From contig OZ038378.1 of assembly GCA_964036045.1 (NCBI GenBank), forward strand, positions 59,148,001 to 59,212,000: 64,000 nucleotides of DNA. The letters run 5' to 3'. Shown in pieces: positions 8,881 to 59,536 of this stretch. Source of the stretch: Eutreptiella sp. 'Long Island Sound 2002'. Its lineage: Eukaryota > Protista > Euglenida. The notes beneath the pieces were generated by a model, which did no database searches, was not told the DNA's origin, and worked only from the letters and a program-made list of their open reading frames with translations. Numbering within the stretch: the stretch's first letter is position 1; each line of letters starts with the position of its first letter. Both the position numbers and the translations under genes were made by a program.

Positions 8881-8989
8881 AAAGTGCAAAATGGGTGCGC
8901 CCTGATCCTTCACCCTCAAATCAGACCGTAAGCCCTGTGCACCCGCGGTGGGACCCAGGGCCCCCATTTGAGCTGGGCGGCATATTAGT

Positions 8990-10100: not shown

Positions 10101-10177
10101 TGGCAGCAAGCCCCCCAATCTTGGTTACCGGGCAAGATGTAAGGCACGTTGGCCATCGGGGGCTGCGAGGCCAAGAT

Positions 10178-25268: not shown

Positions 25269-25330
25269 AGGCCTCGGCAGGGGAAGGGGGAGTCGGGGAG
25301 ACCTGGTGTGTTCGCCTCTGGCGACCGCGC

Positions 25331-28300
25331 TTATTCCAGAAGCTCCCGCTGCACCCCTTCCCTTTCTGCTTGCTGGTGCAGGCGTAGCTCCTGCAACGCC
25401 CACGCCATCGTGCTGCCCGGGCCCAGGCGGGCCTTCAGCAGTGTGGCACGCGCCTTGGCGTGGGCGTACCAGATCCGTATGGACTCCTCCACGACGTGGC
25501 AGAGGAACTCCGTGCCCAGCGAGTGGGGCCCCGTACACTCCAGGTGGGCCAGCTGCATGGAGGGGGTCCGCAGGGCTGCCGCCCACTGCTCCAGCACAGT
25601 CGGTTCCCACAGCTGGTGACGCACTGGGGCCGCCCGTGGCCCCATCTTCTGGTCAAGCCACGCTGCGAGGCGCCGGCGGGCTGGCCCCCACTCGTGCGAT
25701 TGAGCCGAGCAGGCCCACAGGTGGGGCGCCGTCTCGGGCTGTGTCCCGCACAGGAGGCACGTTGTATCCAGCACCGTGCCCCGGTGGGAGGAACGGTGGG
25801 CCAAGACGGTCATGGTCGGGACGTTGTCCATGCGATGCGCCGTGATGTGGCGCTGCTGGTCGTGGTCGAACCAGTCCAGGGGGAGGCCCCCCCCTGGCAT
25901 GAAATTTACCCCCCAGCGGGCCTCGTAGATGGCTTGCGCCGGTATGGAGGCCCGGTCCTGCAGCCAGTCACTCAGCGCCGTCGGGGAGAGCTGGCACTGG
26001 TCGCGGAAGGGCACTGGGGGGATAAATGAGTAGGGGCGCCTGAGGAGCCACGTGAGGTCTACCTCTGGCGGCTCCCGCGTCGCTGCGTCCACACGGACGT
26101 TGAGGTCCGTGATCCAGTGCGACGGTGTGGTCACCACATTGATGGCAGACCTCGGGGAGAGGCGCTGCCCCCCCAGGACAGTGGCGTAGAGGTGGTGGAT
26201 GCCATCTCCGCAGTGCCCTCCTTCCTGGTACGTGCGGAGGGCCCGCACTGCTGCCTCCGAGTCCGGCACCAGCCAGTAAACCCCCTGCTGTGTCGCCAGC
26301 CGGCGGGCATACGAGAGGAGGGCCATCGCTTCCCCCTCCCCGGAGGTGCCCGGTCCCGAGGCCACCTGGGCCTGATACTCCCCAGGCCCGCTCTAGACGA
26401 CCCCGGCCATGGCCATACCCGCCTGCGTGGCCCCTGCATCCACCGCCACGACACTGCCTCGGAGGGTCGCCAGCGCAGGCAGGTCATGGAACCAGACGCC
26501 TGGGCGAGTCTCAGGGGCCAACACTCGCGGGGGGTCAGTCGCCCGGCCGTGGGGCGCCAGGAGGGCCATGTCCCCATGGTGCTCCCTGAGGTGGGTGCAC
26601 AGGGCCTGGTGTAGCTCCGCTGGCACTGTCCCCACCGTATCGAGGGAGTAATAGAGGGGTCCCTTGTGCGGGTGCCCCGGGCATTTGTGCGCCATGCACT
26701 CCGCTGGATATTGGAAGCGCGCCACCGCCGCCGGGGCTATGGCGATCCACGGAAACGGCGGCAGCGTGGAGGTGATCGTCACGAGAGGGGCCTGCGATGT
26801 GCTGGCCCAGTTCCAGTAGGCGGCAGTCGGGGGGGCTGTCGTCCACACGACGGTGGGCGCCCTGACCCCAGTGCGCTGGAGCTGGGCCAGGGACTCCTGC
26901 CGGTGGTCGCCCCACAGCTGGGCGTGCAGTGGCGCATCCACCTGCACTTGGATATCCAGGAGGGCCACCAGGAGGCGGTGGAGCCTGGTGTCGCTGGGCA
27001 GGGTGCCCGGGGGCTGCTGGCACACCCGGGGTTCTGACGCCCAGCCCGCGGTCTCCATGGTGTCCTGCAGGGCCGCGGTCATCCGGAGGGGCTGTCCCCT
27101 ATGGTATATCGTCTCCATCTGGGTTGTTTTGGCCGCCCGGCCCCCCACGATGACTTCCGCCTGATAGGTGGGCACGGCCCTCGGGATCCAGTCCTTGGGC
27201 GCCGCCTGCCATCGCGGCGTGGGTTCCCTCAGGAGCGGGACCAGTACCGCAGCGTGGCGGGCCAGCCACGCCCGTAGCCCCGGGATCCCCTTGCGGGCTG
27301 GCGCTCGTCTCTTCAGGGCTTGCTCCGGCAGCACCTGGTGAGTCTCTGTGTAGAGGTCGCCGAGGTGATGGTAGCCCAGGGCCTGTACCGTTTCGTACAC
27401 CGTCGGGGGGACGACCACCTGCGCGACGGCGCCATACAGAGTTGTGTACACCTCCACCCGGGGGGCAGGGGCCGCCGCCGCCGCCGATCGCGGCCCACCG
27501 GGACCTCGGACTACGATGGGGGTGGTCCCTGAGCACTGGCCCGGCATCCACATGGGCATGGCCACCTCATCCACGACCCGCTGCAGCGTGGCTATGAGGT
27601 GGGGGCACTTGGGGTGATGCGTGTACTGCCCCGGGGTAAGCACCGCCGGGCAGCCCCCTCTGAGCGCCTGGTGCGTTTGCAGGTACCCTGCCGAACCCAC
27701 TCTCGAACTACCGCCGCCTGCCACAAGTGCTCTGACCGAGTGAGACCCTGGCACCCATGCTCCCAGGGTCCCCAGAGCGCGTCGGTATGAGCGTGGCGGG
27801 AGATGCCCGTCACCTGCTTGTATGCTCGCACCATGAGAGCATTGTTTGCCGCGTGTACCTTGGCCGTGGGGCGGTACACGCTGGCTAGGGGGAGCAGCTT
27901 GCTCGGGAGCTTGGCCATGAGCACCATCATGGCCGCGTCCGGGGAGAGCCGCTGGGGGCGGAGCTGTGTCCAGAGCTCCGCCCTGACCTCCGGCAGGTTG
28001 CGGGGGGCCGTAGGCGCCCCCTGGAGGTAAATGTCGGTTCCCATATATCGGAGGACCCTGGAGGGCTGTATCTCCGGGGGCCCTGCCAGTGCCTCTCGCC
28101 GCTGGTCCGGGGTACTCGTCACCCACGCGCGGCCTAGGTGGCGGGCCACGGCTGCTGGCGTAGGCGACCGTAGGGGCCGTGGGTCTGACGTGGAGCCGTG
28201 CTGGATCTTGCGGTCAGGGACGTCCACCCGCAGGATTCCCTGGTAGTATACCCGCTGATCCAATAGGACCCCCTGTATGGGGTGGGAATCGCCCCGCTCC

Positions 28301-32189: not shown

Positions 32190-32635
32190 GGTCCCATTGG
32201 CCCACTGCACCCTGCGTGCCGCGCTGCACCACCAGTGCCTTCTGTGTGGTGCCGCACTGCTTGGTGCTCTGCACCTCACTGCACTGTGTGTGCCCTGCTG
32301 CACTGTTGCTCACTGCCTGGGCGCAGTGGGCAGTGGACCTCCTTCTATGCACTGCCCCACTGCCTGGGCGCAGTGGGCAGTGGACCTCCTGCAACACACT
32401 GCCTCACTGCCGGGGGGCAGTGGGCAGTGGACCTCCTTCAATGCACTGCCCCACTGCCTGGGGGCAGTGGGCAGTGCAACTCCTGCAATGCACTGCCTCA
32501 CTGCCCTGGGGCAGTGGGCAGTGCAACTCCTGTAATACAGTGCCGCACTGCCTGGGGGCAGTGGGTAGTCGAACCCCTGCAATGCACTGCCTTACTGCCC
32601 CGGGGGCAGTGGGCAGTGGACCTCCTGCAATGCTA
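32190..32635 (+). repeat. Minisatellite of about 55-60 bp (GCACTGCC..CTGCCTGGG..CAGTGGGCAGTG..CTCCTGCAAT), 6-7 degenerate copies
   Basis: Repeated gggcagtgggcagtg and cctcctgcaa/gcactgcc blocks. Confidence 0.85.
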
Positions 32636-37250: not shown

Positions 37251-38367
37251 GTTTTGCACCAGTCCATGGCATCCGGGGGGATCGGTTCCAAGCATCACTT
37301 GGTGTGGCCTTTATGCCAACTTCTGGAAGGGAGTCACAACAATGACTTCACTAAAACACCCTATGAAGACAGTGTAGGGAAAGTGGGGGAGGATGCCCTT
37401 CTTGGATCGAACTTCTTGGACACCCAAATCAGGAGTATATCCATGCTCCAAATCATGGGTGTCGCGGAAGTTTAGCCCAAAAATTTTGGAAGATCCCTTC
37501 AACTTTCTGGTGGCCTGGGGCACAAATTGTGCACAGCATCCACCAGAAAGCGGAAGCGGATCGCCCGGATACTTGGATGTACTGAGTGCAACCTGCGGTT
37601 GACTCGTTACATCCACCCCTTGGCCAGAAGAATCTTATCAGCAACCCTAATATGGACCACATCTCGGGAAGAGGGAAGCTGCTGGGCCCATGTGTGCAGA
37701 GGCTCGAGGTCTTCAGTAGGCACGCCTGTGTGCCCAACTTCAATCAATTAAGTGGGACCACGGGGAAGCCAGAGAAAGTCCTCAAGACACTAAACACCCG
37801 TGGGGTCCGGTTGGGTTGGGCTTGCCATGGTGACAAACAAGGGATTTCAAAGAAATGGAGGGGTGGGGCAGGGAGACTAATGGGTGTGAATACATGGCAA
37901 AGCAACGAGGCAACTTGTGACGAGAAGGCGAAAAGGGGCGTGGGTGGAAGGAGTGGGAATGGTGGGGGTGGATGAAAGAAACCCGAGGGGGGGGGGGGGG
38001 GTTGGCTGTCTACAAATCGACTAACCCTGAGTGAACCTTCACTTCACCCTAAAGTAACAAATCTAGCTCTCACTGAAAACTAAGTGAAAGGTAAGTGAAA
38101 GCTAATTGAAAGTTCGGTGAAAGCTCAGTGAACCTTTCACTCAGAGTTAAGTGAGGGTTTGGTTGGGGTTCACTCGGTCGGCAAAGTCGAATTAACCTTC
38201 AAAAAAAAAGTACCCCCCACCCACAACCTTCACCAAATATCAATGCAAATCACAGGGAAAAGGCAAAGAAGGAGGAGAAGGAGAAGGAAAAAATGGTCAA
38301 AGAGGATGAGTAAGTCGATCGAAAGCTAAAAGAGGAGGAGGAGGAGGACAAGCGTACCACGGCGGCG

Positions 38368-41300
38368 TCTGCAAAGCCCCGGATGCTGCTTTCGTTGAAT
38401 TGACAGGGTGGTCAACCAGGTATGGCTTCATTTTTCTGTGAGTGTCATTGCACTGGGTATATTGCATCTGATTTCGTTTGGTCTGTGTCAAATTCGTCTG
38501 ATGTTGTGGGTATTGGTCTCCTCGTCTGTCCCTCGTTGACAGTGTGCATGTATTGCAATGTTTCCCCATTATTCAGTGTTTGTTGCTCGTTGTGGTGTGG
38601 CACATGACACCTACTTTCCTTCTTAAACACAACATAACATTTTGGTTCCGTCATACACAATAGATTTAGAAGGGGGAGTAGACAAGGTGTCCAGCCGTCA
38701 CACGATGCATGCACATCATGTGTCTGCAAATGCCAGTCTGCAGTTGCTATGTGCCCATGTTCACAAACTTGACGGACCTCCTACTACTCATGCAGGAGTT
38801 TGCCTTTTGACATTATTGCCTTGTGTGTCCTTATCAATATGGGCACGTCTACACTATACATGAAGTATTTAGGCATGCACTTGGGTACCCTTGAGGGGGG
38901 GGTGCTCGGGGTTGGGGTTGGGGTTGGGGGCTGTGCGGGGGGACAATACCATCAGCACTATTTCCGGTTCAACGCATGCGAGTTCAAGGGTACTGCCATT
39001 CCTTTATAGCTAGGCTCTGCAGGGCCCAACAAATAGGAGTTTTCATCAGACACCATGGGATTTCGGTTCGTTTGGTAACGTGTTGTGTTGTTGTACATCC
39101 CTTTAATATATACGTGGTTTCTAGCACTTTCTTTGTCCCGGGCTCTGCGGAGCCCGGCATGTCCTAAATCCTTTTTTGCACCCTCATTTGTCACAGGTGT
39201 AGTGGCCCTTCATTCTTAGGTGCGATGTGTGGCAGGGATGGTAGATGGCGATTGCTCGGAGAAGCTGCCGGTATGCCCAATCTTTTTCGAGTGGACCCAT
39301 CTTGTCCCGGACTTTACCACCCCCACGGTGTATACTACGGAGGAAAAGCATTTCCTCTGCGGGTGCAGTCTGCCCCGCCCCTTTATCTCACCGTCATCCC
39401 CAAGTTATTCGCAGGACCTCCTGACTCCTGAATTGGAGTCGGACGGGAACTTGTGATCCGGCATCTGCCAAGGATTGTGGACAAAGAGGAGGCCTCACAA
39501 TGGTACACCATTCTGAGTGCCTCCTTCTACATGGTGATAGACCTATGATTGAATTTAGTTGTTGGACTGTGTTGCAAGTCTGCCTAAATGGTAATCGTGA
39601 GCTGGTCCTGTGCAGCCCATGGAAGTTGTTTCAGCATTGATGCAGTAGCTAATGTGCCTGTCTTGTGTCTGCACATGTGTGTGGCTGGATTGAGATGCCA
39701 TTTTTCAATGATGTGCTGAGCTGGGCCTTGCAGGGCCCAGAGCCCACATGCAATTTTTGGATTGAATTTGGCCCTAATAGGAGGTAAATTGTATCACTAG
39801 GCCTTGCAGAGCCCATTATGCTGAATCAATCAAATTTGCAGGGTGAATTGACTGTGTGTTTCTTCATGTGCCTGTGATCAAGACTGCAATTGTCACCTTG
39901 ACTAGCCTGCTTTCATTTGTATGTTGCAATGGGTACGGTGCTACTGACATGTCCCTCGTTGACACTATGCATGTATTGCTATGTTTGCCCATGATAAGTC
40001 TAGACACGTAGTGCCAAGTTTGTGTCTCCATGTTTCTATAGTGCTATTGACCTGTCGATTTTTAATTTTCCGCTCAGCTGGGCACTGCACAGCCCAGGTG
40101 CATTGTTTTCAATGAATGCACATGTGCCACTATGTACTTTGCGTTTCTGGCCTCTGCAGAGCCCAGGATGCTGCTTTCGTTGAATTGTCAAGGCGGTCAA
40201 CCAGGTATGGCTTCATTTTTCTGTGAGTGTCATTGCACTGGGTAGAGTGCATTTGATTTCGTTTGGTCTGTGTCAAATTCGTCTGATGTTGTGGGTATTG
40301 GTGTCGTTGACAGTGTGCATGTATTGCAATGTTTCCCCATTATTCAGTGTTTGTTGCTCGTTGTGGTGTGGCACATGACACCTACTTTCCTTCTTAAACA
40401 CAACATAACATTTTGGTTCCGTCATACACGATAGATTTAGAAGGGGGAGTAGACAAGGTGTCCAGCCGTCACCCGATGCATGCACATCATGTGTCTGCAA
40501 ATGCCAGTCTGCAGTTGCTATGTGCCCATGTTCACAAACTTCACGGACCTCCTACTACCCATGCAGGTGTTTGCCTTTTGACATTATTGCCTTGTGTGTC
40601 CTTATCAATATGGGCACGTCTACACTATACATGAAGTATTTAGGCGTGCACTTGGGTACCCTTGGGGGGGGGGGGGGGGGTGCTCGGGGTTGGGGTTGGG
40701 GTTGGGGGCTGTGTGGGGGGACAATACCATCAGCACTATTTCCGGTTCAACGCATGCGAGTTCAAGGCTACTTCTTTTTGCGATTCCTTTATGGCTAGGC
40801 TTTGCAGGGCCCAACAAATAGGAGTTTTTCATCAGACACCATGGGATTTCAGTTTGTTTGGTAACGTGTTGTGTTGTTGTACATCCCTTTAATATATACG
40901 TGGTTTCTAGCACTTTCTTTGTCCCGGGCTCTGCGGAGCCCGGCATGTCCTAAATCCTTTTTTGCACCCTCATTTGTCACAGGTGTAGTGGCCCTTCATT
41001 CTTAGGTGCGATGTGTGGCAGGGATGGTAGATGGCGATTGCTCGGAGAAGCTACCGGTATGCCCAATCATTTTCGAGTGGACCCATCTTGTCCCGGACTT
41101 TACCACCCCCACGGTGTATACTACGGAGGAAAAGCATTTCCTCTGCGGGTGCAATCTGCCCCGCCCCTTTATCTCACCGTCATCCCCAAGTTATTCGCAG
41201 GACCTCCTGACTCCTGAATTGGAGTCGGACGGGAACTTGTGATCCGGCATCTGCCAAGGGTTGTGGACAAAGAGGAGGCCTCACAATGGTACACCATTCT

Positions 41301-44300
41301 GAGTGCCTCCTTCTACATGGTAATAGACCTATGATTGACTTCAATTGTTGGACTGTGTTGCAAGTCTGCCTAAATGGTAATCGTGAGCTGGTCCTGTGCA
41401 GCCCATGGAAGTTGTTTCACCATTGATGCAGTAGTTGATGTGCCTGTCTTGTCTCTGCACATGTGTGTGGCTGGATTGAGATGCCATTTTTCAATTATGT
41501 GCTGAGCTGGGCCTTGCAGGGCCCAGAGCCCACATGCAATTTTTGGATTGAATTGGGCCCTAATAGGAGGTAAATTGTATCACTAGGCCTTGCACAGCCC
41601 ATTATGCTGAATCAATCAAATTTGCAGGGTGAATTGACTGTGTGTTTCTTCATGTGCCTGTGATCAAGACTGCAATTGTCGCATTGACTAGCCTGCTTTC
41701 ATTTGTATGTTGCAATGGGTGCGGTGCTACTCACATGTCCCTCGTTGACACTATGCATGTATTGCTATGTTTGCCCATGATAAGTCTAGACACGTAGTGC
41801 CAAGTTTGTGTCTCCATGTTTCTATAGTGCTATTGACCTGTCGATTTTTAATTTTCCACTTAGCTGGGCACTGCACAGCCCAAGTGCATTGTTTTCAATG
41901 AACCCACATGTGCTACTATGTACTTTGCGTTTCTGGCCTCTGCAGAGCCCAGGATGCTGCTTTCGTTGAATTGACAGGGTGGTCAACCAGGTATGGCTTC
42001 ATTTTTCTGTGAGTGTCATTGCACTGGGTATATTGCATTTCATTTCGTTTGGTCCGTGTCAAGTTCGTCTGATGTTGGGGGTATTGGTCTCCTCGTCTGC
42101 CCCTCGTTGACAGTGTGCATGTATTGCAATGTTTCCCCATTATTCAGTGTTTGTTGCTCGTTGTGGTGTGGCACATGACACCTACTTTCCTTCTTAAACA
42201 CAACATAACATTTTGGTTCCGTCATACACTATAGATTTAGAAGAGGGAGTAGACAAGGTGTCCAGCCGTCACACGATGCATGCACATCATGTGTCTGCAA
42301 ATGTCAGTCTGCAGCTGGTATGTGCCCATGTTCACAAACTTGACGGACCTCCTACTACCCATGCAGGTGTTTGCCTTTTGACATTATTGCCTGTTGTGTC
42401 CTTATCAATATGGGCACGTCTACACTATACATGAAGTATTTTGGCGTGCACTTGGGTACCCTTGGGGGAGGGGGGGGGGGGGCTCGGGGTTGGGGGGGGG
42501 GTTGGGGTTGGGGGATGTGTGGGGGGACAATATCATCAGCATTATATCCGGTTCAACGCATGCGAGTTCAAGGCTACTTCTTTTTGCGATTCCTTTATAG
42601 CAAGGCTCTGCAGGGCCCAACCAATAGGAGTTTTTCATTTGACACGATGGGATTTCAGTTTGTTTTATAACGTGATGTGTTGTTGTACATCCCTTTAATA
42701 TATACGTGGTTTCTAGCACTTTCTTTGTCCCAAATCCTGTCCCAAATCCTTTTTTGCACCCTCATTTGTCACAGGTGCAGTGGCCCTTCATTCTTAGGTG
42801 CAATGTGTGGCGGGGATGGTAGATGGGGACTGCTTGGAGAAGCTGCCGGTATGCCCAATCTTTTTGGAGTGGACCCATGTTGTCCCGGACTTTATCACCC
42901 CGGCATGATATACTACGGAGTAAGAGCATTTCCTCTGCGGGTGCAATCTGCCCCGCCCCTTTATCTCACCGTCATCCCCAAGTTATTCGCATGACCTCCT
43001 GAATCTTGAATTGGAGTCGGACGGGAACTTGGAATCCGGCATCTGCCAAGGATTGTGGACAAAGAGGAGGCCTCACAATGGTACACCATTCTGAGTGCCT
43101 CCTTTTACATGGTGATAGACCTATGATTGAATTCAGTAGTTGGACTGTGTGGCAAGTCTGCCTAAATGGTGGTCATGAGCTTTTCCTGTGCAGCCCATGG
43201 AACTTGTTTCACCATTGATGCAGTAGTTGATGTGCCTATCTTGTGTCTGCACATATCTGTGGGTGGATTGAGATGCCATTTTCCAATTATGTGCTGAGCT
43301 GGGCCTTGCAGGGCCCAGAGCCCACATGCAATTTTTGGATTGAATTTGGCCCTAATAGGAGGTAAATTGTATTACTAGGCCTTGCAGAGCCCATTATGCT
43401 GAATCAATCAAATTTGCAGGGTGAATTGACTGTGTGTTTCTTCATGTGCCTGTGATCAAGACTGCAATTGTCGCATTGACTAGCCTGCTTTCATTTGTAT
43501 GTTGCAATGGGTGCGGTGCTACTCACATGTCCCTGGTTGACACTATGCATGTATTGCTATGTTTGCCCATGATAAGTCTCGACACGTAGTGCCAAGTCTG
43601 TGTCTCCATGTTTCTATGGTGCTATTGACCTGCCAATTTTTAACTTTCCACTCAGCTGGGCACTGCTTAGCCTAGGTGCATTGTTTTCAATGAATGCACA
43701 TGTGCTACTATGTAAATAGCGTTTCTGGCCTCTGCAGAGCCTAGGATGCTGCTTTCGTTGAATTGATAGGGTGGTCAACCAGGTATGGCTTCATTTTTCT
43801 GTGAGTGTCATTGCACTGGGTAGAGTGCATTGGATTTCGTTTGGTCTGTGTCAAATTCGTCTGATGTTGTGGGTATTGGTCTCCGCCTCCGTCGCTCGTG
43901 GACGTTGTGCATGTATTGCATTGTTTCCCCATTATTCAGTGCTTGTTGCTCGTTGTGGTGTGGCACGTGACACCTACTTTCCTTCTTAAACACAACATAA
44001 CATTTTGATTCCGTCATACACAATAGATTTAGAAGGGGGAGTAGACAAGGTGTCCAGCCGTCACACGATGCATGCACATCATGTGTCTGCAAATGCCAGT
44101 CTGCAGTTGGTATGTGCCCATGTTCACAAACTTGACGGACCTCCTACTACCCATGCAGGTGTTTGCCTTTTGACATTATTGCCTTGTGTGTCCTTATCAA
44201 TATGGGCACGTCTACACTATACATGAAGTATTTTGGTGTGCACTTGGGTACCCTTGGGGGGGGGGGGGGGTGCTCGGGGTTGGGGTTGGGGTTGGGGGCT

Positions 44301-47300
44301 GTGTGGGGGGACAATACCATCAGCATTCTATCCGGTTCAACGCATGCGAGTTCAAGGGTACTTCTTTTTGCGATTCCTTTATAGCTAGGCTCTGCAGGGC
44401 CCAACAAATAGGAGTTTTTCATCAGACACCATGGGATTTCGGTTCGTTTTGGAACGTGTTGTGTTGTTGTACATCCCTTTAATATATACGTGGTTTCTAG
44501 CACTTTCTTTGTCCCGGGCTCTGCGGAGCCCGGCATGTCCTAAATCCTTTTTTGCACCCTCATTTGTGACAGGTGCAGTTGCCCTTCATTCTTAGGTGCG
44601 ATGTGTGGCAGGGATGGTAGATGGCGACTACGCGGAGAAGCTACCGGTATGCCCAATCATTTTCGAGTGGACCCATCTTGTCCCGGACTTTACCACCCCC
44701 ACGGTGTATACGACGGAGGAAGAGCATTTCCTCTGCGGGTGCAATCTGCCCCGCCCCTTTATCTCACCGTCATCCCCAAGTTATTCGCAGGACCTCCCGA
44801 CTCCTGAATTGGAGTCGGACGGGAACTTGGGATCCGGCATCTGCCAAGGGTTGTGGACAAAGAGGAGGCCTCACAATGGTACACCATTCTGAGTGCCTCC
44901 TTTTACATGGTGATAGACCTATGATTGAATTTAGTTGTTGGACTGTTTTGGAAGTCTCACTATCTAGTGATCATGAGATGGTCCTGTGCAGCCCATGGAA
45001 GTTGTTTCACTATTGATGCAGTAGCTGATGTGCCTGTCTTGTGTCTGCACATGTGTGTGGCTTGATTGGGATGCGATTTTTCAATGATGTGCTGAGCTGG
45101 GCCTTGCAGGGCCCAAAGCCCACATGCAATTTTTGGATTGAATGGGGCCCTAATATTAGCTAAATTGTATCACTAGGCTTTGCACAGCCCATTATGCTGA
45201 ATCAATCAAATTGGCAGGGTGAATTGACTGTGTGTTTCATCATGTGCCTGTGATCAAGACTGCAATTGTCGCATTGACTGGCCTGCTTTCATTTGTATGT
45301 TGCAATGGGTATGGTGCTAATGACATGTCCCTCGTTGACACTATGCATGTATTGCTATGTTTGCCCATGATGAGTCTGAGCACGTAGTGCCAAATCTCTG
45401 TCTCCACATTTCGATAGTGCTATTGACCTGCCGATTTTTAATTTTCCACTCAGCTGGGCACTGCACAGCCCAAGTGCATTGTTTTCAATGAATGCACATG
45501 TGCTACTATGTAGTTTGCGTTTCTGGGCTCTGCGGAGCCCAGCATGCTGCTTCCGTTGAATTGACAGGGTGGTCAACCACGTATGGAGTCATTTTCTTTG
45601 GGTGTCATTGCACTGGGTATATTGCATTTGATTTCGTTTGGTCTGTGTCAAGTTCGTCTGATGTTGTGGGTATTGGTCGCCTCGTCTGTCGCTCGTTGAG
45701 AGTGTGCATGTATTGCAATGTTTCCCCATTATTCAGTGTTTGTTGCTCGCTGTGGTGTGGCACATGACACCTACTTTTGTGCGTCAACACAACATAACAT
45801 TTTGGTTCCGTCATACACTATATATTTAGAAGGGGGAGTAGACAAGGTGTCCAGCCGTCACACGATGCATGCACATCATGTGTCTGCAAATGCCAGTCTG
45901 CAGTTGGTATGTGCCCATGTTCACAAACTTCACGGACCTCCTACTACCCATGCAGGTGTCTACCTTTTGACATTATTGCCTTGTGTGTCCTTATCAATAT
46001 GGGCACGTCTACACTATACATGAAGTATTTAGGCGTGCACTTGGGTACCCTTGGGGGGGGGGGGGTGCTCGGGGTTGGGGTTGGGGTTGGGGGCTGTGTG
46101 GGGGGACAATACCATCAGCATTCTATCCGGTTCAACGCATGCGAGTTCAAGGGTACTTCTTTTTGCGATTCCTTTATAGCTAGGCACTGCAGGGCCCAAC
46201 AAATAGGAGTTTTTCATCAGACACCATGGGATTTCGGTTCGTTTTGGAACGTGTTGTGTTGTTGTACATCCCTTTAATATATACGTGGTTTCTAGCACTT
46301 TCTTTGTCCCGGGCTCTGCGGAGCCCGGCATGTCCTAAATCCTTTTTTGCACCCTCATTTGTGACAGGTGCAGTTGCCCTTCATTCTTAGGTGCGATGTG
46401 TGGCAGGGATGGTAGATGGCGACTACGCGGAGAAGCTACCGGTATGCCCAATCATTTTCGAGTGGACCCATCTTGTCCCGGACTTTACCACCCCCACGGT
46501 GTATACGACGGAGGAAGAGCATTTCCTCTGCGGGTGCAATATGCCCCGCCCCTTTATCTCACCGTCATCCCCAAGTTATTCGCAGGACCTCCCGACTCCT
46601 GAATTGGAGTCGGACGGGAACTTGGGATCCGGCATCTGCCAAGGGTTGTGGACAAAGAGGAGGCCTCACAATGGTACACCATTCTGAGTGCCTCCTTTTA
46701 CATGGTGATAGACCTATGATTGAATTTAGTTGTTGGACTATTTTGGAAGTCTCACTATCTAGTGATCATGAGATGGTCCTGTGCAGCCCATGGAAGTTGT
46801 TTCACTATTGATGCAGTAGCTGATGTGCCTGTCTTGTGTCTGCACATGTGTGTGGCTTGATTGGGATGCGATTTTTCAATGATGTGCTGAGCTGGGCCTT
46901 GCAGGGCCCAAAGCCCACATGCAATTTTTGGATTGAATGGGGCCCTAATATTAGCTAAATTGTATCACTAGGCCTTGCACAGCCCATTATGCTGAATCAA
47001 TCAAATTGGCAGGGTGAATTGACTGTGTGTTTCATCATGTGCCTGTGATCAAGACTGCAATTGTCGCATTGACTGGCCTGCTTTCATTTGTATGTTGCAA
47101 TGGGTATGGTGCTAATGACATGTCCCTCGTTGACACTATGCATGTATTGCTATGTTTGCCCATGATGAGTCTGAGCACGTAGTGCCAAGTCTCTGTCTCC
47201 ACATTTCTATAGTGCTATTGACCTGCCGATTTTTAATTTTCCACTCAGCTGGGCACTGCACAGCCCAAGTGCATTGTTTTCAATGAATGCACATGTGCTA

Positions 47301-50295
47301 CTATGTAGTTTGCGTTTCTGGGCTCTGCGGAGCCCAGCATGCTGCTTCCGTTGAATTGACAGGGTGGTCAACCACGTATGGAGTCATTTTCTTTGGGTGT
47401 CATTGCACTGGGTATATTGCATTTGATTTCAGTTGGTCTGTGTCAAGTTCGTCTGATGTTGTGGGTATTGGTCGCCTCGTCCGTCGCTCGTTGACAGTGT
47501 GCATGTATTGCAATGTTTCCCCATTATTCAGTGTTTGTTGCTCGCTGTGGTGTGGCACATGACACCTACTTTTGTGCGTCAACACAACATAACATTTTGG
47601 TTCCGTCATACACTATAGATTTAGAAGGGGGAGTAGACAAGGTGTCCAGCCGTCACAAGATGCATGCACATCATGTGTCTCCAAATGCCAGCCTACAGCT
47701 GGTATGTGCCCATGTTCACAAACTTGACGGACCTCCTACTACCCATGCAGGTGTCTACCTTTTGACATTATTGCCTTGTGTGTCCTTATCAATATGGGCA
47801 CGTCTACACTATACACACATGTGTAGACACAAGACAGGCACATCAACTGCATCAATAGTGAAACAAGTCCCATGGGCTGCACAGGACCAGCTCACGACCA
47901 GCAGATAATTAGACTTGCAACACAGTCGAACAACTGAATTCAATCATAGGCCTATCACCATGTAAAAGGAGGCACTCAGAATGGTGTACCATTGTGAGGC
48001 CTCCTCTTTGTTCACAACCCTTGGCAGATGCCGGATCCCAAGTTCCCGTCCGGCTCCAATTCAAGATTCGGGAGGTCATGCGAATGACTTGGCAACGACG
48101 GTGAGATCAAAGGGCGGGGCAGAGTGCACCCGCATAGGAAATGCTTTTCCTCCGCCGTATACACCGTGGGGGTGGTAAAGTCCAGGACAACATGGGTCCA
48201 CTCCAAAAAGATTGGGCATACCGGTAGCTTCTCCGAGTAGGCTCCATCTACCATCCCCGCCACACATTGCACCTAAGAATGAAGGGCCACTGCACCTGTG
48301 CCAAAGGCGGGTGCAAAAAAGGATTTAGGACATGCTGGGCTCCGCAGAGCCCGGGACAAAGAAAGTGCTAGAAACCACGTATATATTACAGGGATGGACA
48401 ACAACACATCACGTTCCAAAACAAATTGAACATCCATGGTGTCTAATGAAAAACTGCTGTTGGTTGGGCCTTGCAGAGCCTAGCTATAAAGGAATCGCAA
48501 AAAGAAGTACCCTTGAGCTCGCATGCGTTGAACTGGAAATAATGCTGATGGTATTGTCCCCCCACACAGCCCCCAACCCCAACTCCGACCCCGAGCACCC
48601 CCCCCCCCCACCTAGGGTACCCAAGTGCACGCCAAAATGCTTCATGGGCTGGATTGAGATGCCATTTTTCAATTATGTGCTGAGCTGGGCCTTGCAGGGC
48701 CATGCGCCCACATGCAATTTTTGGATTGAATTGGGCCCTAATATTAGGTAAGTTGTATTACTACGCCTTACAAAGCCCATTATGGTGAATCAATCAAATT
48801 TGCACGGTGAATTGACTGTGGGTTTCTTCATGTGCCTGCGATCAAGACTGCAATTGTCGCATTGACCAGCCTGCTTTCATTTGTATGTTGCAATGGGCAC
48901 GGTGCTAATGACATGTCCCTCGCTGACACTATGCATGTATTACTATGTTTGCCCATGATAAGTCTGGACACGCAGCGCCAAGTCTGTGTCTCCACGTTTC
49001 TACAGTGCTATTGACCTACCGATTTGTATTTTTGCACTTAGCTGGTCACTGCACAGCCTAGGTGCATTGTTTTCAATGAATGCACATGTGCTACTATGTA
49101 CTTTGCGTTTCTGGCCTCTGCACAACCCGAGATGCTGCTTTCGTTGAATTGACAGGGTGGTCAACCAGGTATGGCTTTATTTTTCTTTGGGTGTCATTGC
49201 ATTGTGCATATTGTATTTGATTTCGTTTGGTCCGTGTCAAATTCGTCTTGTGTTGTGGGTATTGGTCGCCTCGTCTGTCCCTCGTTGACAGTGTGCATGT
49301 ATTGCAATGCCTCCCCAATATTCAGTGTTTGTTGCTCGCTGTGGTGTGGCACATGACACCTACTTTCCTTCGTAAACACAACATAACATTTTGATTCCGT
49401 CATACACAATAGATTTAGAAGGGGGAGTAGACAAGGTGTCAAGCCGTCACCCGATGCATGCACATCACGTGTCTGCAAATGCCAGTCTGCAGCTAGTATG
49501 TGCCCATGTTCACAAACTTCACGGACCTCCTACAACCCATGCAGGTGTTTGCCTTTCGACATTATTGCCTTGTGTGTCCTTATCAATATGGGCACGTCTA
49601 CACTATACATGAAGTATTTTGGCGTCCACTTGGGTACCCTTGGGATGGGGGGTGGGGGGGTGCTCGGGGTTGGGGTTGGGGTTGGGGTTGGGGGCTGTGT
49701 GGGGGGACAATACAATCAACATTACATCCATTTCAACGCATGCGAGTTCAACGGTACTTCTTTTTGCGATTCCTTTATAGCTAGGCTCTCTAGAGCCCAA
49801 CCAATAGCAGTTTTTCATTCGACACCACGGGATTTCGGTTTCTTTTGGAACGTGATATGTTGTTGTACATCCCTTTAATATATACGCGGTTGCTAGCACT
49901 TTCTTTGTCTTGGGCTCCGCGGAGCCCGGCATGTCGTAAATCCTTTTTTGCACGCCTCATTTGTGACAGGTGTAGTGGCCCTTCATTCTTAGGTGCGATG
50001 TGTGGCGGGGATGGTAGATGGCGACTGCTCAGAGAAGCTGCCAGTATGCCCAATCATTTTCGAGTGGACCCATGTTGTCCAAGATTTTACCGCCCCCATG
50101 GTGTATACTACGGAGGAAAAGCATTTTTTTCAGCGGGTGCAGTCTGCCCCGCCCCTTTATCTCATCGTCAACCCCAATTCATTGGCATGACCTCCCCAAT
50201 CTTGAACTGGAGTCGGACGGGAACTTGGGATCCCGCATCTGCCAAGGGTAGTGGACAAAAAGGAGGTCTCACAATGGTACACCATTCTGAGAGCC
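38368..50295 (+). repeat. Tandem array (macrosatellite) of 1.79-kb units, 6.7 copies
   Basis: The anchor ATGCTGCTT(T/C)CGTTGAATTG marks unit starts at 38382, 40167, 41953, 43745, 45543, 47338 and 49131 (periods 1785, 1786, 1792, 1798, 1795, 1793). Confidence 0.97.
47814..48646 (-). other. 833-bp in-place inversion inside unit 6 of the macrosatellite
   Basis: The segment normally running CATGAAG..CACATGTGTG is present as its reverse complement between unchanged flanks (ctata| and |ggctggattgag); the unit length is preserved. Confidence 0.93.
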
Positions 50296-51870: not shown

Positions 51871-53636
51871 AACCCAAATGTAGCCGTGATCTTGTGCCCT
51901 CGATTTTGCGGCCTTTCTCCTTGGTTGTACGAACCAAGTACAGGCAGGCCTGCGTCAGCGTCAAAACCCAGTGATTGCTTTTGGTCTTTTTGTCATACAC
52001 TTCTTCCATGCCAGAGACCCACCCGGCATGGTACCCGGCCGCAAAAAAGGTGTGTAGTTAGTAGGGACACAGGAAGAGGCAACGCGCGGAGCGTAGAGAA
52101 CGGTATGCACACAAGACTATGCGGCAAGAACACAACGAGAGGCTACAAATCGAACATTGCAAACATACATGTCTGCTGCGTCACTTGAAAAACCACCGCC
52201 GCATTCTGGTCCTTTGTGACGTCACATCACGACATGGGGTCGCACTTGGTGAGGTGGCTGTGGGGGAAATGGTACTGACTGGGGTACAAAGGCACCATGG
52301 CACATAGTGCTGCGCAACGAAATAAAGAGCCTGCACAGGTGCTGGGGGACACTGGGAACGTGCTGAACAGGCAATTACGCCTTAGGGACAAGAGCATAAC
52401 CACCACACACCACCCGCAGAGCAAGCCCTCTCAGGGCGTAACTGACGCCACTTGGACGTGTACACGCAGTTCTCCGAAGGCCCCCTGTGGGCCACGGCGG
52501 TGGCACGCTTAGGGCGTAACTGACGCGACTTGGACATGTACACGCGGTTTTCCGAAGGGGAAGGGGTCACACATGCATTGGTAGGCGTGCACAAGTGCTG
52601 TAGAACACGTAAAGCATACTTCACAAAGTAATTAGCACCGGGGACAATTGTGGAGCCAGACGACACACGCGACGTTGTTACTGACTTGTATGGGGTCATG
52701 CAAGACATCTAGGACACGTTCGAGAGTGGAGCCACGATCAGCAAAGGGGCTCTACACCCAAAAATGATGAAATTACAAAAAACGGACAATTACATTACGT
52801 TACTCGCCCTCAAAAACCCCTGAAGCCAACCTAACCTCCACGGAGACATGCAGGACAAATTGGGCTCCCCAGAGCCATAGACAAAGGAATGTACACATAG
52901 TTGTTTGCAGTGTTACCCAAACTTAGGCGTCACAAGTTGCCGAGCCCCCACCTGGCGCTATGGCCCACGGAAGTCCATGTTGTAGTGAGGGGAAAAGTAT
53001 GTGAAAAGGCTTGTTATTTTTTGAGTATCCAAACCCCCCTGGTGGCAACATGCAAAAACAAGGTGTGTATTTCAAATGTATGCCATTATTTGGATTTCTG
53101 GAAACACACAGATTTTCAAAATAAAGACATTCCATCACCAAAATATAGTGCTATTTTACATTTAGACCACTGCATACCAGTGCGGGGGGGGGGGGGGGGC
53201 TACCTATTTTTCTCTCCCCTTTGTTCCACGTTGATCACACAACCCCCTATACACCACAGATGAGGGAACCCCAAACGTACCTTTCATTGAAGCACACACA
53301 AAACTATCCCAAAGCATGTACTTGTATTTCCTATTTTAACCAACCTGGCCGAAATTTCGGCCGGGTCCATCGAAACTCGGAATATGAACACTGAAATGGG
53401 TACCTATGACAGTAGACATGAGCAAGGAACACAGGAGCAGTGACATTTGAGCAGAGTGTGCAACATAATATACTCAATTACAAGCAAATACTTGCCACCT
53501 GACGAATCAAAGCAGACTTTTGCAGTGCCTACGGGGAAACACAATAATAAAAGGCTGAAGAGGCTGAGGACTGCATGCTGGCCGAAATTTCGGCCAGACT
53601 TCATACTGACAGGCAATATAAGCAGCAGGACTGGCA

Positions 53637-56148
53637 TTAGCGCTTGCGCAGACCAGATGCACGGGGCTTCTTAGCATGTGTGTTAGCAGGACGCTTGGCA
53701 GGGGCAGCAGCACCAGGCTTGGCAGTGGCAGAGTTCTGTGACTGTGTGTTTCCACCCTGGGATGGTGAAAAATGATTCACAAAAGTATTCATACCTTTGC
53801 CAGTAGGGGCCACAGTGCCTGAGGAGGAAGCTGGGGTGGCCTGAGCGCACTGCGTGCCACTGGGTGAGGGGGCAGGGGCAGTTTTGGGTTTCTTCTTTGG
53901 AGTGTGTGTCTCTGGTTGCGACTCTGCCTCCCCATCTTGCTCCTCACGATCCTCATCTACATACCTAACCCCAGAACAATCCACAGGAACACCTGCCCCC
54001 AAGTCGTGGTACACATCCTCCCATGACTTACCCGAAAGGGCACACACAACATTACAGTCCTTGGAAAACGTGGTAGACATCATGCTTGCAAAATACACAG
54101 ACAGAGTCCCCAGCAAAACCAGTTGCCTGCCCGTTCTGGGACCGGAACCAGGCTCAAAAGAAATGAGAATATCTCAACAGGCATGACAGACGACATGGGT
54201 CCTTCAATAAAAGCCACGTAACGGGGCAGCCTGTTATCAAAGGCCGTGGCAGAACAAATGGAAATCAGATGGGATGTAGAACTGTACAGCGGGGTCTTGC
54301 TTGACAAATTGAAAATTGCAACATCACACTGATACATATCCTCAGCCACAGTGGCCTTCAAAGCAGCAACAGTGGCTTTCACATCAGCAGACTCACCCGC
54401 AACGAACACAGGCACACCGGACAAAAGCAGCTGCGCAACCATGTTATGCAAACCAGCTGTATAGAGGCGGGGCACCTCAATGACACAAGCAGCAAAGGGC
54501 AGTGAACTAATGATACTGGAAACAGGGACTCCACAACACATTGCCATCACTTCCACACGGCCTGACTCTGCAATGAGTTTGCCTGTGCTTGACTCAACGA
54601 GGGACTCCCTAGCACACTGGATACTGACCAGACCAGTATCGGATTTTTCACAAACAGGCTTAGCAACAGGTTTCGGCAACAATCCCCGCAACCCCTCATA
54701 TTTGGGTTCCTTCCAAAGAGGGGCCTTAATTACTGCTGACCACGGTGGCCAAGGGTTTTCTTCAGTCCAGGTCCAACTGCAATAGGCTACCTTTAGGTCT
54801 GATGCAATAGCGCACTGCCTTTTGGCCATCTCGATAGTACCAAGTGTAGCTGCACAGAGGTGGTGTCACAGGGTGGGCTCCTATTGTGCATTCATTGAAC
54901 GACACACAAGCTGGCCGAAATTTCGGCCACGTGGGTCAATTTATTCGAATACAAACCCCTTTTTGACCAAAACATACCTCTGGTGTTGTTCACAAGCCCA
55001 TTGGTAACCGCCTCGGGATGAAGAATGTGCCAGGACCACATCTGGGCCTTTTTAACATCTTTTGTAAGTTTTTTGAGACCAGGTAGGGTACTTTTTGTCC
55101 CATCCATGTAACCTACGATGTCGCGAATTCGGTCACGCGTGATGCCTTCCACTTCCTTGAACGTACCCAGTGCAGGATGTAATCCACGCTTCTCCATGGC
55201 TGCCATGGCGTCTACTGAAGCAAGACCCACAAATTTCACCAAACGCCCAACGCCGACCCACCGTTTGGCAACAGCACTCTGCACAGGAGAACATGTGGAA
55301 CACAGAAGCTGGCCGAAATTTCGGCCAGGTCGATCGACAAAACCGAATTAATAAACGAAACACACCGCAGTGCCTTCCTCGGCAGTAACACCACACTCTT
55401 CAAGCATAACAGTAATGTGATGGTACAGGGTGTACTCATTGGCATCCTCATCCTCAAGCCTATCCAGGAGTAGGGACATTCGCTCCGATGTGGTGGATGG
55501 TGAGCCAGCAGTGGTCTGGATTTGATGTAGGCCTGCAAGCCGGCGCCTAGTCCGCAGGGGGCAGTCCTGTTTGACTTCATAACCACCAAATACCAGGGTC
55601 CAATCCGGAGTCTCCATATTTTTCATCTCAAATTCCGTCTTGTGTTTTTGGGCAGCAGTGTAAACATGCTGACCCCCCAACAGAACCCAGCGAGTGGCTG
55701 TGCAACAGGAATATTCGTAACAGCAGGGTCGAAAATTCAGACGCGAAAACGGTACTATCGAGAAGAATACCACAACACACATACGAGTGACTTTATAAAA
55801 AAGAAGATCCTGGATGTTATCCACAAGCGGGGCTGCCTTCAGATCGTCGTAGCGGCGTTGCACGCGATCATTCGAAATCCTACGGACCTGCCCAAATTTT
55901 CGGTCGTGGTCGATAATAATCTCATCCCACCGAACCTTTATTTTCGTCGTTGACGTAGCCCAGTCGGATAACTTGATGGAGGATGATGAATTTTTCTTTG
56001 GTGCGGCCTTAGGCTTCTTTTGAAGTCCCTCTGTGCTCGCGTGGTCCTCTTGAGACTGGGATTGCACTTGAGATTGCCCGTTGTCTGCTGCAGGCTCACC
56101 ATCTGGCGAAACGGCCATGTCGTGTGATACCCCTCCAGGCTCAGTCAT
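53637..56148 (-). CDS. Multi-exon transposon accessory gene with an N-terminal ParB/sulfiredoxin-like domain; C-terminal half unassigned (possibly methyltransferase-like); one unresolved frame change at about 54130
   Basis: Three phase-compatible GT-AG introns (55784-55698, 55365-55279, 54977-54850). The spliced protein has GQVRRISNDRVQRRYDDLK..YKVTPTRWVLLGGQHVYTAA..AGLHQ, resembling ParB box I/II spacing. ATG at 56148 follows a CTGTAG acceptor-like site. Confidence 0.65.
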
Positions 56149-56644
56149 AAAATAAAGGGCTACAGGGCAACATTTCATGAAGGGGAGAGTTCCCAGATAG
56201 CAAATAACAAGCACAGATAAACCAAAAAAGGACCAAAACGGACTGCCTCACAAGAAAATCGGATAACTTGGCGAAATTTCGGCCAGTACTGCTCTGCATG
56301 TCAAACCACTGTGTACAAATACCATTCTGAGAGGCTGGCCGAAATTTCGGCCAAAACCTTATGTCATTTGTGTTCTGGGGGTAGCCATATGACAAAACAA
56401 CAAGTCTGGCCGAAATTTCGGCCAGAAAAACATGAAACAGCAAATAGACACACCAAAAGCACTGGCAATGCGTGGCAGAAGCCATACCACAGTGACAAAC
56501 ACAGTTGCAAACAGAAATCAGTCCCAGTCCTGGGTATCCACACCGATGTGTGCCGCCTCATCTAGGGCTTCAAAGGAGGCAACCCTGTCTGCATCACAAT
56601 CAATTTCCTGGTCACTAACACAAGAGTCGATGGCAATGGAATCA

Positions 56645-58726
56645 TCACGGGTGGGGGGGTACTGGGCGGGGGGGGGCCGGGGGGGGTACTGGGGGGCCTC
56701 TGGCTCGGGGCTTCGGGGGTGGCTTTGGGGGCAAGGCAATTCCAACCGGAGCAGCAGCAGGAGCAGCAGGCGGTGCACGGTTGGCAGCGCGGATAGAAGC
56801 ATGTGCAGTACACAACACCCCTTGCTGAGCAGCAGTGCGGGCAGGTGCATTTGTGTGTAGAAATTCCTCAACACCCTCAGGAACCCTGGTACGCGCAACC
56901 AGATTTTGCATTGCATGCAACAGAACCACTTTTAAACGGTCTGTGGTGATTCATGTTCTAGACATGGTACCGGGGAACGTCAAATCCTCAACTGCATCTA
57001 GTCTTCTCACCTCAACTTTATAGTCCGGAACGGGAACACAAATCGGCAGGCTCTGTGTGTGGGCTGTCAAGATGAATTGTTTAAGATTGGCAGAGAACAT
57101 TGCCACGGATCTCTCAGTCAGCAGACCACGCAAAACTTTCTCTCCCGGTTGGACAGGGGGAAGTGTCAGAAATAAATCAGACGACTATAGGACACTGGTA
57201 CAGGCAGTGTTGCGGCGACAGTGGGCTGAGAACCGACTCAGAAGTGCCTCACCCAGCTCCTCAGAGTGGATACACCCTAGGGAGGCGGAATGCCACTGAC
57301 TCCAAAACAAAAGAGCAACCGCACTGGTTTTCACATACTCCGTGGTTAACTGCTCCTTGGGCTTTAGGATGTTCAGCATGAGCAGTAGGGACATCTCAAG
57401 TGCCTGCTTAGCTACAATCCCGGAACCTGCCCCCCGGCCCTCCCAGTTGCACTCACGAACCAAAGTCCCAATGCTGAAAGCAGCTGGACAGTATGTGTAC
57501 AGCAAAGCCTTAAGGGCTAATAACATACGCAAACCCTTGCGCTGAATGGGTGTCAAGTCCCGCTGGCTATTGAGCAGGGAAGTGACGCGCTCATCTAGTC
57601 AGCCTCTATTGGACGATGTGGCTAGCATGAGTCCAAGCAACGTCTTCTCCATATGGATGACCTTGACCTTGCGAGGGAGGATAGACCCAACCTGAAGGCT
57701 GTTCCCCTGCTCCAAAACCTTAATGAACGGCACGAACGCTCTGTAGATCAATTCAACGCAATACTTATAGCTATGCCATACTCCGTACACCAAAGGAAAA
57801 CCCAACAGTAATTGTGGTACATTCCACGGAACATAAGCAGCACCATAACACAGCTTAAGTAGGGCAAAGTGTGTTTTCATGTCCACAAGCAGCGGAACAC
57901 AGTGTCTGGTGCGGTGTTCCACACATGACAAATCAACCACGAGTTGCAAAAGCTCTTTGTGTGTGCCGGAGCGGAGCTCAGACAGGAAAAAGGGTCTCCA
58001 GTTGAGGGAACGAACATTTTTTCTGGCAATATCCAAAGGAGCACGAACGAAAACTCTCTGAATACCTTGGTTGGCAACATCAATACGATCAAACAATGCT
58101 CTATGTGAGCGAAAGATGTCATCTGCAACCTTTGGTACCCTGGCCTCAATTTCGGCCAGCTCTGGCAGACCCCGGTATGCAGGTAGGGCAGTAGTGTGCA
58201 AAACAGCAACAGCTGTACAGTTTAGGGTTAAGTCGGGTGAATGGGGATCACCTCCCGACCTGTAACTCCTCAGGTTATCAAACCATATACAAACTTGCCT
58301 ACGGTGCATGGTGTTCCACAAGTTGTGTGCTGCTAGTCCAACGCGATGGTGAATGGACTCCTGCTTAGTGTTACACTGACCAAGGACTCCCACCTTACGG
58401 CGTTGGCGGCAGGACATAATACCCCAGTTGTAACCAGACCCACAGTTAGAGTATGGGAGGGCCATATGACGTAGCAGGCAGTATAGGGCATGGAACTGTG
58501 ACAAAGATGTCATGTACCATCGTGGGGGCTTCTTCTCAGTGGCGGTAGCCTTCAACTGTGTCAGGGAGTGCCGGCTGCTGCGATTCTTCCGCAACATGAG
58601 GCAGAATTGCAAAAGCTTTTGCAGAGTCCCACCACGTAATGCATTTCGCAACAGCCCTTTGGCTGTAGTAGCAAAAGCACCAGTAACTGCAGCATGTACA
58701 ACATTGACAGTAATAGCAGAAGACAT
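56645..58726 (-). pseudogene. DDE-type transposase of the TIR element (Academ/DUF6589-like signature), about 690 codons in one frame with 3 premature stops
   Basis: The ORFs 58726-57599, 57556-57185, 57133-56951 and 56929-56645 are all in the same frame. Motifs: IWFDN, PLLVD, GVWHSYK, HSEELGE. Confidence 0.7.
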
Positions 58727-59303
58727 TAATGCTGAGACAAGAAAACGGTTATGTAGGAGTGTATGGTGTACTACTCATGAACAACGACAATTGCAAGCTG
58801 GCCCAAATTTCGGCAAGGTGTGCTCAAAGGGGAAATAATTGCTTAAATGTTCAAAAATAGGAAAAGCGTGCCGAAATTTCGGCCAGACCGCCCAAAAACC
58901 AGAATATAAGTGCTTGAATAGTGAACACACCAAAAAGCTGGCCGAAATTTTGTCGAGCCCTGAGAAAAACCAAAATAACTATGCCTATTCACTAGGAAAC
59001 CAAAAAGCTGGCCGAAATTTCGGCCAGAAGGGTCAAAAACTGCATATACACATAGTTGTTTGCAATGTTATCCAAAAGCTGGCCTCATTTTCGGCCAGCT
59101 TCACAAAAACGTCAAATACAACACACTAGAAGACGGGGATACACAAGGCTAACACATCAACACGTATTTCAACGGGTGTCACACAGCTCTGTCAACAACT
59201 TTGGTCACATACGTCAAATAACATACTCAAAGTAGAAATGTAGAATATTGTCACATCGCGCGTATACGGGGTCCTAGAGGGTGGGCAACTTGTGACGCCT
59301 AAG

Positions 59304-59536
59304 CCAAAAGCTGGCCTCATTTACTGCCCGCTGCAGAAAAACGTCAAATATAACACACTAGAAGAAGTGGATACACAAGGCTAACACATCAACACGTATT
59401 TCAATGGGTGTCACACAGCGCCGCCAACAACATTGGTCACATATGTCAAATAACATACTCAAAGCAGAAATGTAGAACATTTCTCACATGGTGCGTATAT
59501 GGGGTCCTAGAGGGTGGGCAACTTGTGACGCCTAAG
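59304..59536. mobile_element. Right terminus of an older related element into which the 6.4-kb transposon inserted
   Basis: Near-copy of 59072-59303 ending in the same TIR (59517-59536). Joined to 52892-52921 across the TSD it rebuilds the internal sequence cacatagttgtttgca.tgtta.CCAAAagctggcctcattt. Confidence 0.85.

Follow-up and report, generated by a model that had tools for sequence, protein, structure and literature searches.

In the genome of the euglenid Eutreptiella sp. 'Long Island Sound 2002', a two-gene DNA transposon occupies positions 52922-59303 of a 64,000-nt stretch of contig OZ038378.1 (GenBank assembly GCA_964036045.1, positions 59,148,001 to 59,212,000 of the forward strand; hereafter the window). 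The element carries a transposase gene, a second gene with predicted introns (gene 2), and a short palindrome repeated along its length. The transposon lineage to which it belongs is real, abundant and probably undescribed. On balance, we favor a cut-and-paste system of two components: the protein encoded by gene 2, the partner protein, would read the palindromes and assist or direct the transposase.

That this 6,382-bp segment is a cut-and-paste DNA transposon bounded by terminal inverted repeats (TIRs) is near certain. A previous reading made from the sequence alone (the sequence-only reading) had assigned it perfect 20-bp TIRs beginning with CTTAGG and a 5-bp target-site duplication (TSD), and both assignments were borne out. 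Direct comparison of the two ends showed the perfect repeat, with pairing that extends to 25 nt at 92%, and the same five bases, CCAAA, stand on both sides. We also noted a third copy of the TIR at 59517-59536, overlooked previously, which is the end of an older copy. The segment 59304-59536 is 91% identical to the last 232 bp of the element itself (59072-59303), and the other side of the interrupted target, 52889-52921, matches the element's own 59044-59076. Given these matches, we conclude that the target of the insertion was the subterminal part of an older relative. The uninterrupted sequence at 59044-59100 of the element thus serves as an empty-site control. It contains a single CCAAA, at 59072-59076, and the duplication is therefore fixed at 5 bp.

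Four further full copies (L001, L011, L012 and L013) were located via their protein products in the same assembly (ENA ERZ25074135). All four have 20-bp TIRs identical to those of the window element and are flanked by perfect 5-bp TSDs that differ from one another (AGCTA, ATATG, TGACA and CTAGG), such that a fixed 5-bp TSD is found for five of five full copies at different loci, the window copy included. A sister family in the same genome (L005), whose transposase is 30% identical, has ends reading CTTAG[A/T]CGAACCAAGTGTCCACCC and AAGCA on both flanks. Because this family shares both properties, CTTAG termini and a 5-bp TSD are features of the lineage rather than accidents of one copy. For a metagenome relative (L003), with TIRs of 23 bp, the flanks GTAAG and GTATG match at four of five bases and are ambiguous. 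The L005 element, at 7061-14260 of its contig, is enclosed by a longer, outer inverted repeat with arms at 6792-6890 and 15375-15473, and appears to be nested within another inverted-repeat element.

The family numbers hundreds of copies in the host genome. In a host DNA run, thousands of contigs map to the element and many internal-deletion joints are seen, as would be expected of a DNA transposon with deletion derivatives, and element sequence is also present in estuary, sediment and urban metagenomes. The copy in the window is dead: its transposase gene is interrupted by three stops and frameshifted once, and gene 2 has lost 75 bp and is likewise frameshifted. An intact element would be autonomous and about 6.5 kb long. 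None of the copies examined combines two intact genes: in L001, gene 2 is open and the transposase frameshifted, while in L011 the 722-aa transposase is intact and gene 2 broken. Activity may depend on complementation between copies.

The sequence-only reading described the transposase as a single frame of about 690 codons. The three in-frame stops are present (57599-57601, 57185-57187 and 56951-56953, in the minus-strand frame from 58726), as are all four of the motifs named in that reading, WFDN, LLVD, GVWH and EExxE. What it overlooked is that a homopolymer (C-run) near 56659 differs in length by 4 nt, such that the frame changes ahead of the acidic C-terminus, which is conserved; past this frameshift, the gene truly ends at 56518. 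Most other copies are free of the window transposase's defects, and the gene is intronless and encodes about 722 aa. A cluster with 267 member sequences is headed by an intact copy of this length (P0217). At 50% identity, an exhaustive search made without profiles gave 592 clusters, most of them of 650-820 aa and about 30% identical. No relatives were found among viral contigs, and metagenome contigs gave five short loci only. An RNA-virus or transcript origin of the relatives' contigs of about 3 kb was considered and rejected, as these are DNA metagenome contigs and two contigs of 6.5 kb have the full two-gene layout.

Pfam gave no match to the transposase, either for the pieces in the window or for 10 long relatives, and a search with 56 aligned relatives returned noise only at E values up to 5. 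An AlphaFold2 model of the intact 722-aa protein, built on the alignment of these 56 relatives, was confident (predicted local distance difference test (pLDDT) 88.5, predicted template modeling score (pTM) 0.82). When the model was compared with solved structures by VIA-align, the best 37 matches were all DDE transposases or recombinases, with Z scores of 9.9 for the P element (348 residues), 9.2 for Hermes, 7.8 for Transib, 7.5 for Tn5, 7.1 for ISCth4 and 6.8 for RAG1. The model thus indicates that the large open reading frame (ORF) is an RNase H-fold DDE enzyme with an all-helical insertion domain, which would be the helical block at residues ~356-480. Fully or nearly invariant across the 56 relatives are residues D150 (WxDN), D232, D282 (LLVD), W317-H318-K321 (YGVWHxYK) and E360, and 42-44 of 46 sequences retain E489, E490 and E493 of the EExxE helix. 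The succession of secondary-structure elements leads us to infer a catalytic triad of D150, D282 and one glutamate of the 489-493 helix. The fifth strand of the fold is followed by the invariant H318, and the motif here reads GVWH, with G in place of the C/D of the signature defined for hAT, P, MuDR and Kolobok as well as Dada (PMC10045372; PMC9587614).

Among predicted structures, the best matches to the transposase were DUF6589 proteins (Foldseek E 5e-9 to 1e-6, probability 1.00), with template modeling (TM) scores of 0.63-0.65 over 560-570 residues; these include a TM of 0.63 to a cluster composed 100% of DUF6589 proteins and an E value of 1e-7 to named DUF6589 entries. Bacterial ISKra4, IS66 and IS701 ranked far below. 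DUF6589 (Pfam PF20231), found in cnidarians, Glomeromycota, rusts, amphioxus and diatoms, has the same full-length fold, in which a helical domain is inserted into an RNase H core. In contrast, none of the 56 family members matches the DUF6589 Pfam model, even at an E value of 5, many DUF6589 proteins are longer than this transposase, and some of the matched entries carry annotated RING-, PHD- or C2H2-type domains. By modeled structure, and by structure only, DUF6589 proteins are the nearest recognizable relatives of the transposase.

The second component, gene 2, had been proposed to be an intron-containing gene with a GGQH motif, and the other copies agree with this. When three proposed introns are removed from copy L001, a single open frame of 751 codons results, its exons located at 10611-10944, 11032-11363, 11451-11751 and 11880-13168 of L001. 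All five copies agree in the GT donors and in the lengths of these introns (87, 87 and 128 nt), introns 1 and 2 being exactly 87 nt each; the last base of the intron 2 acceptor is changed in two of the five. In the relatives L002 through L005, the exons flanking intron 1 sit in separate ORFs. In the window copy, the frame of gene 2 is shifted by 1 nt at 54114, where most other copies have an extra base, and there is a 75-bp in-frame deletion at 54029/54030, where L001 holds 75 additional bases. All four exons are kept in L004 (41-57% identity) and L005 (about 31-34%), and the exons are kept in part in the metagenome elements L002 and L003. Identities of gene 2 across relatives track the divergence of the transposase, the two genes have the same order and the same strand at every locus, and the gene 2 ORF cluster has 248 member sequences. 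As read from these frames, gene 2 is a four-exon gene that would encode a protein of ~751 aa and is conserved in every relative examined. RNA contigs from three estuary metatranscriptomes cover the element; they are unspliced and of low depth, and neither confirm nor refute the introns. In L004, gene 2 of a sister family of 45% identity is split by a nested insertion (11552-14641), which has an open frame of ~1,030 codons (called as a gene of 976 aa) with a weak match to a Mutator-like element (MULE) transposase.

The sequence-only reading labeled gene 2 ParB-like, and the patterns behind this label are present. Both GQxR in exon 1 and GGQH in exon 2, at the start of a predicted helix, are conserved, and the order of strand and helix around these motifs is what we take to be expected for the ParB/sulfiredoxin (Srx) and DGQHR fold. 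Language-model neighbors of gene 2 include ParB_N and DUF6551 clusters (0.88-0.89). An Atlas shape search with a poor model of the protein placed ParB_N, HTH_ParB and DGQHR among the top seven family sets (TM 0.27-0.43). We lean toward a ParB/Srx fold for the N-terminus. Several observations count on the other side, and the label is probable only. No piece of gene 2 from five families matches a Pfam, NCBIfam or PHROGs model; a profile of the N-terminus searched against PDB sequences matched acetone carboxylase alone, by chance, and its alignment to P1 ParB with hhalign had a probability of 0.13. The AlphaFold2 model of gene 2, for which an exon 1-2 read-through was folded on a shallow and fragmentary alignment, reached a pLDDT of only 46.5, and the wide PDB searches with this model by Foldseek and VIA-align were uninformative. 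The introns that we propose also rest on frame logic and conservation. Farther along the protein, exon 3 matched Pfam HTH_47 at an E value of 0.072, below the cut-off, a weak winged-helix hint. Exon 4 would encode a domain of ~300 aa, and the C-terminus is basic and of low complexity. A language-model search with exon 4 found nothing related, and tblastn of gene 2 pieces against phages gave one chance match. A methyltransferase in exon 4 was considered and rejected, being suggested by motif resemblance alone; at E values up to 10, methyltransferase models had no match in what exon 4 encodes in four families.

The third component of the element is an 18-bp palindrome, TGGCCGAAATTTCGGCCA. With up to three mismatches allowed, 13 sites were found compared to 0.01 expected. 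All 13 are inside the element, between 53346 and 59097, and none is elsewhere in the window. Within the element, they fall nearly all in non-coding DNA. They include an array of five upstream of the transposase, the units of which are tandem duplicates, and L001 has the same array. The two palindrome-bearing introns of gene 2 (introns 2 and 3) have in common a conserved unit of ~31 bp around the palindrome. Every related family, among them two more from this genome and several that come from other samples, has the same layout with a palindrome of its own: ATCGAAATTTCGAT in the L005 family (17 sites), TTCGCTCCATGGAGCGAA in L002 (13 sites), TGCGCGCCnnGGCGCGCA in L003 (13 sites) and GTCCCGTnnACGGGAC in L009/L010 (3-4 sites). 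The palindromes are private to each family and confined to the element, a distribution that speaks for a DNA-binding protein encoded by the element, probably a dimer, as the factor that recognizes them. The same distribution bears on the possibility that the palindrome is an independent miniature mobile or hairpin-forming sequence that has colonized the element and is used by neither protein. Short palindromic repeats can spread on their own, and the ~31-bp unit shared by the intron-resident copies would fit such spread. We nevertheless regard this as very improbable, as the 64 kb of the window hold no site beyond the 13 within the element, the flanks of L001 have no site, and the combination of one layout with a different palindrome in each family points to co-evolution with an element-encoded factor.

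Which of the two proteins would be this factor is a separate question. In hAT, CACTA and P elements, arrays of subterminal repeats are bound by the transposase. This counts against a role for gene 2 at the palindromes, as does the helical N-terminus of 140 residues in the transposase model, which could bind DNA itself. If the palindromes were bound by the transposase, like the subterminal repeats of Ac/Ds, En/Spm and P elements, gene 2 would have another role, be it regulation of the element, anti-silencing, or that of a degenerate descendant of a ParB-methyltransferase accessory gene. The regular subterminal array of five palindromes beside one TIR and the transposase N-terminus would both suit such an arrangement. 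So would the ParB-like and methyltransferase accessory proteins known in algal transposons (PMC12477816), together with a WPPW-like motif and an alpha/beta-like sequence pattern that we read in exon 4. We consider this alternative, the main rival, rather unlikely. Palindromes are also present in both palindrome-bearing introns, in the spacer between the genes and in the 3´ region, at a distance from the ends, where end recognition needs none; their exact dyad symmetry suggests a symmetric dimer, typical of helix-turn-helix (HTH) proteins; and no methyltransferase model matches gene 2 of any family at E values up to 10.

Many dyad-symmetric sites of 16-18 bp beside a gene for a possibly ParB-fold protein also recall ParB-parS and SopB-sopC. 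A partition or tethering module for excised or extrachromosomal copies, comparable to ParB-parS or EBNA1, would account for arrays with a 70-bp period resembling plasmid centromeres such as sopC, and for the weak ParB_N and DGQHR shape matches. In contrast to those systems, the sites here are spread over 5.7 kb, introns included, in a eukaryotic nuclear transposon. The element, which has two genes only, encodes no ParA-like partner, and GGQH replaces the CTP-binding GERRxR motif of ParB. Cut-and-paste elements have no need of episomal maintenance, and all copies examined are chromosomal, with TSDs. We give a partition module little chance of being correct.

In the two-component system that we favor, the transposase would cut at the CTTAG ends and join them to target strands staggered by 5 bp, with D150, D282 and one glutamate of the EExxE helix (489-493) forming the active site. 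The gene 2 protein, with an N-terminus that is probably of the ParB/sulfiredoxin type followed by an HTH-like segment, would bind the palindromes of its own family as a dimer and mark or condense the element DNA. Such a mark would help the transposase to locate and pair ends that belong to its own family, as opposed to those of sister families that share the genome. The features of the window copy are collected in Table 1.

Table 1. Features of the transposon copy and its insertion site (window positions; gene 2 exons and introns as proposed).
Feature	Positions	Strand	Basis or remark
Left 5-bp TSD, CCAAA	52917-52921		Direct reading; same five bases 3´ of the right TIR
TIR, CTTAGGCGTCACAAGTTGCC, 3´ end relative to the element's genes	52922-52941	+	Perfect 20-nt inverted repeat with 59284-59303
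Two palindromes in non-coding DNA downstream of gene 2	53346-53596		53346-53363 and 53579-53596
Gene 2 exon 4, stop codon included	53637-54849	-	Frame analysis; broken in the window copy; conserved in L002-L005
Gene 2 intron 3	54850-54977	-	128 nt, GTATGT..TGCAG; palindrome at 54912-54929
Gene 2 exon 3	54978-55278	-	Weak winged-helix hint; 57% identical in L004
Gene 2 intron 2	55279-55365	-	87 nt, GTGTGT..TGCAG; palindrome at 55310-55327
Intronic palindromes, one each in gene 2 introns 2 and 3	55310-55327, 54912-54929		Palindrome scan
Gene 2 exon 2	55366-55697	-	Conserved GGQH motif; candidate ParB/Srx-like core
Gene 2 intron 1	55698-55784	-	87 nt, GTATGT..CACAG; in frame and stop-free in the window family
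Gene 2 exon 1	55785-56118	-	ATG at 56118; conserved GQxR motif
Intergenic group of three palindromes	56268-56424		Sites 56268, 56336 and 56407; spacing 68 and 71 bp
Transposase pseudogene	56518-58726	-	Frame analysis; three stops and a frameshift; predicted catalytic residues kept
Degenerate palindrome (2 mismatches) within the transposase coding sequence	58141-58158		Palindrome scan
Five-palindrome array 5´ of the transposase	58799-59097		Sites 58799, 58868, 58939, 59009 and 59080; spacing 69-71 bp
TIR, 5´ end relative to the element's genes	59284-59303	-	Exact reverse complement of 52922-52941
Right 5-bp TSD, CCAAA	59304-59308		Direct reading
Terminal 233 bp of the older copy, insertion host of the window element	59304-59536		Own TIR at 59517-59536

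Other repeats are present elsewhere in the window. Immediately upstream of the region studied, at 38364-50232, are about seven tandem units of ~1.79 kb each, 91-100% identical to one another, and this array reads as a large satellite or tandemly duplicated element. Just before it, at 37909-37928, is a degenerate match to the TIR (16 of 20 bases, GGCAACTTGTGACGAGAAGG) that may be the relic end of another copy. A very long microsatellite of the GTGGT/GTGTG type with extreme GC skew is located at 24126-26000, within a GC-rich block at 24-34 kb, and at 8712-8850, and a 47-bp tandem repeat at 32294-32622 has at least six units, each with a short inverted repeat (CACTGCC...GGCAGTG). An Rfam scan of the window gave no match.

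The sequence-only reading had called the transposase Academ-like. Academ elements are likewise eukaryotic DDE transposons with TIRs and coding capacity beyond the transposase. The TSD length and cargo of the element do not agree with this label. AcademX TSDs are 3-4 bp. AcademH TSDs are given as 9-10 bp in PMC10045372 (citing Kojima 2020), such that either Academ length differs from the 5 bp of this family. The cargo of Academ elements is an XPG nuclease or a helicase, neither of which is detectable here, as no gene 2 piece from five families matched a Pfam or NCBIfam model for either. In the paper texts and supplements searched, we also found no source that links DUF6589/PF20231 to Academ or to another transposon superfamily.

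With respect to the TSD, the element is closer to Transib, which typically makes 5-bp TSDs, has CAC termini, and is the only such DDE superfamily known to us. Transib and RAG1 share the TSD length, and their DDE fold with an insertion domain matches the transposase model at Z 7.8 and 6.8. The termini here are CTTAG rather than CAC, however, and the fold match is weaker than that of the P element and Hermes and much weaker than that of the DUF6589 models.

Two known systems bear on the partner protein. PIF/Harbinger elements belong to an unrelated transposase lineage, with a TSD of 3 bp and a partner of the Myb/SANT type, and are not known to have dispersed palindrome arrays. They too have a conserved second gene; by analogy, gene 2 may supply the transposase with sequence-specific DNA binding, and the arrangement that we propose, a separate DNA-binding protein serving the transposase, would resemble theirs. 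Sola1-1_Ec32 of Ectocarpus and other algal transposons encode ParB-like plus DNA-methyltransferase accessory proteins (PMC12477816). In Sola1-1_Ec32, likewise an algal/protist DNA transposon, the accessory protein is proposed to bind the element that encodes it via a ParB-like domain, but the transposase is named as Sola1, and the accessory protein, in which a methyltransferase domain is clear, is transcribed from the opposite strand (PMC12477816). The element described here has a DUF6589-like transposase, no methyltransferase match, a gene 2 on the same strand as the transposase and prominent private palindrome arrays.

Repbase recognizes 20 DDE superfamilies (PMC9587614). The claim that the combination of termini, TSD length and cargo fits no named superfamily agrees with our comparisons, as it matches no described superfamily that we found, while ParB-like cargo in itself is not new (PMC12477816). 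The novelty thus lies in the lineage of the transposase, in a partner free of a methyltransferase and in palindrome arrays that are private to each family. There is a fair chance that the lineage has the status of a new superfamily. The most inclusive proposal is that this is an unnamed DDE lineage at the superfamily level, defined by CTTAG termini and a 5-bp TSD and widespread in protist and metagenome data, whose ParB/Srx-fold protein binds private, element-wide palindromes as a family address against cross-mobilization. We advance it tentatively, as a possibility that is somewhat less likely than not.

To our knowledge, few groups of eukaryotic DNA transposons need a second protein, and how sister families in one genome avoid cross-mobilization is poorly understood. 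The lineage makes this question tractable, as it offers a conserved partner gene, exact palindromes that are specific to each family, and divergent families in one genome. Private "address tags" read by a transposon's own DNA-binding protein are a testable idea. If the partner does have a ParB/Srx fold, it would be a second, methyltransferase-free type among the ParB-like accessory proteins of algal transposons. The transposase family, with its 592 clusters, matches no Pfam model and is therefore annotated as hypothetical protein wherever it is found; giving it a name would improve the repeat annotation of protist and algal genomes.

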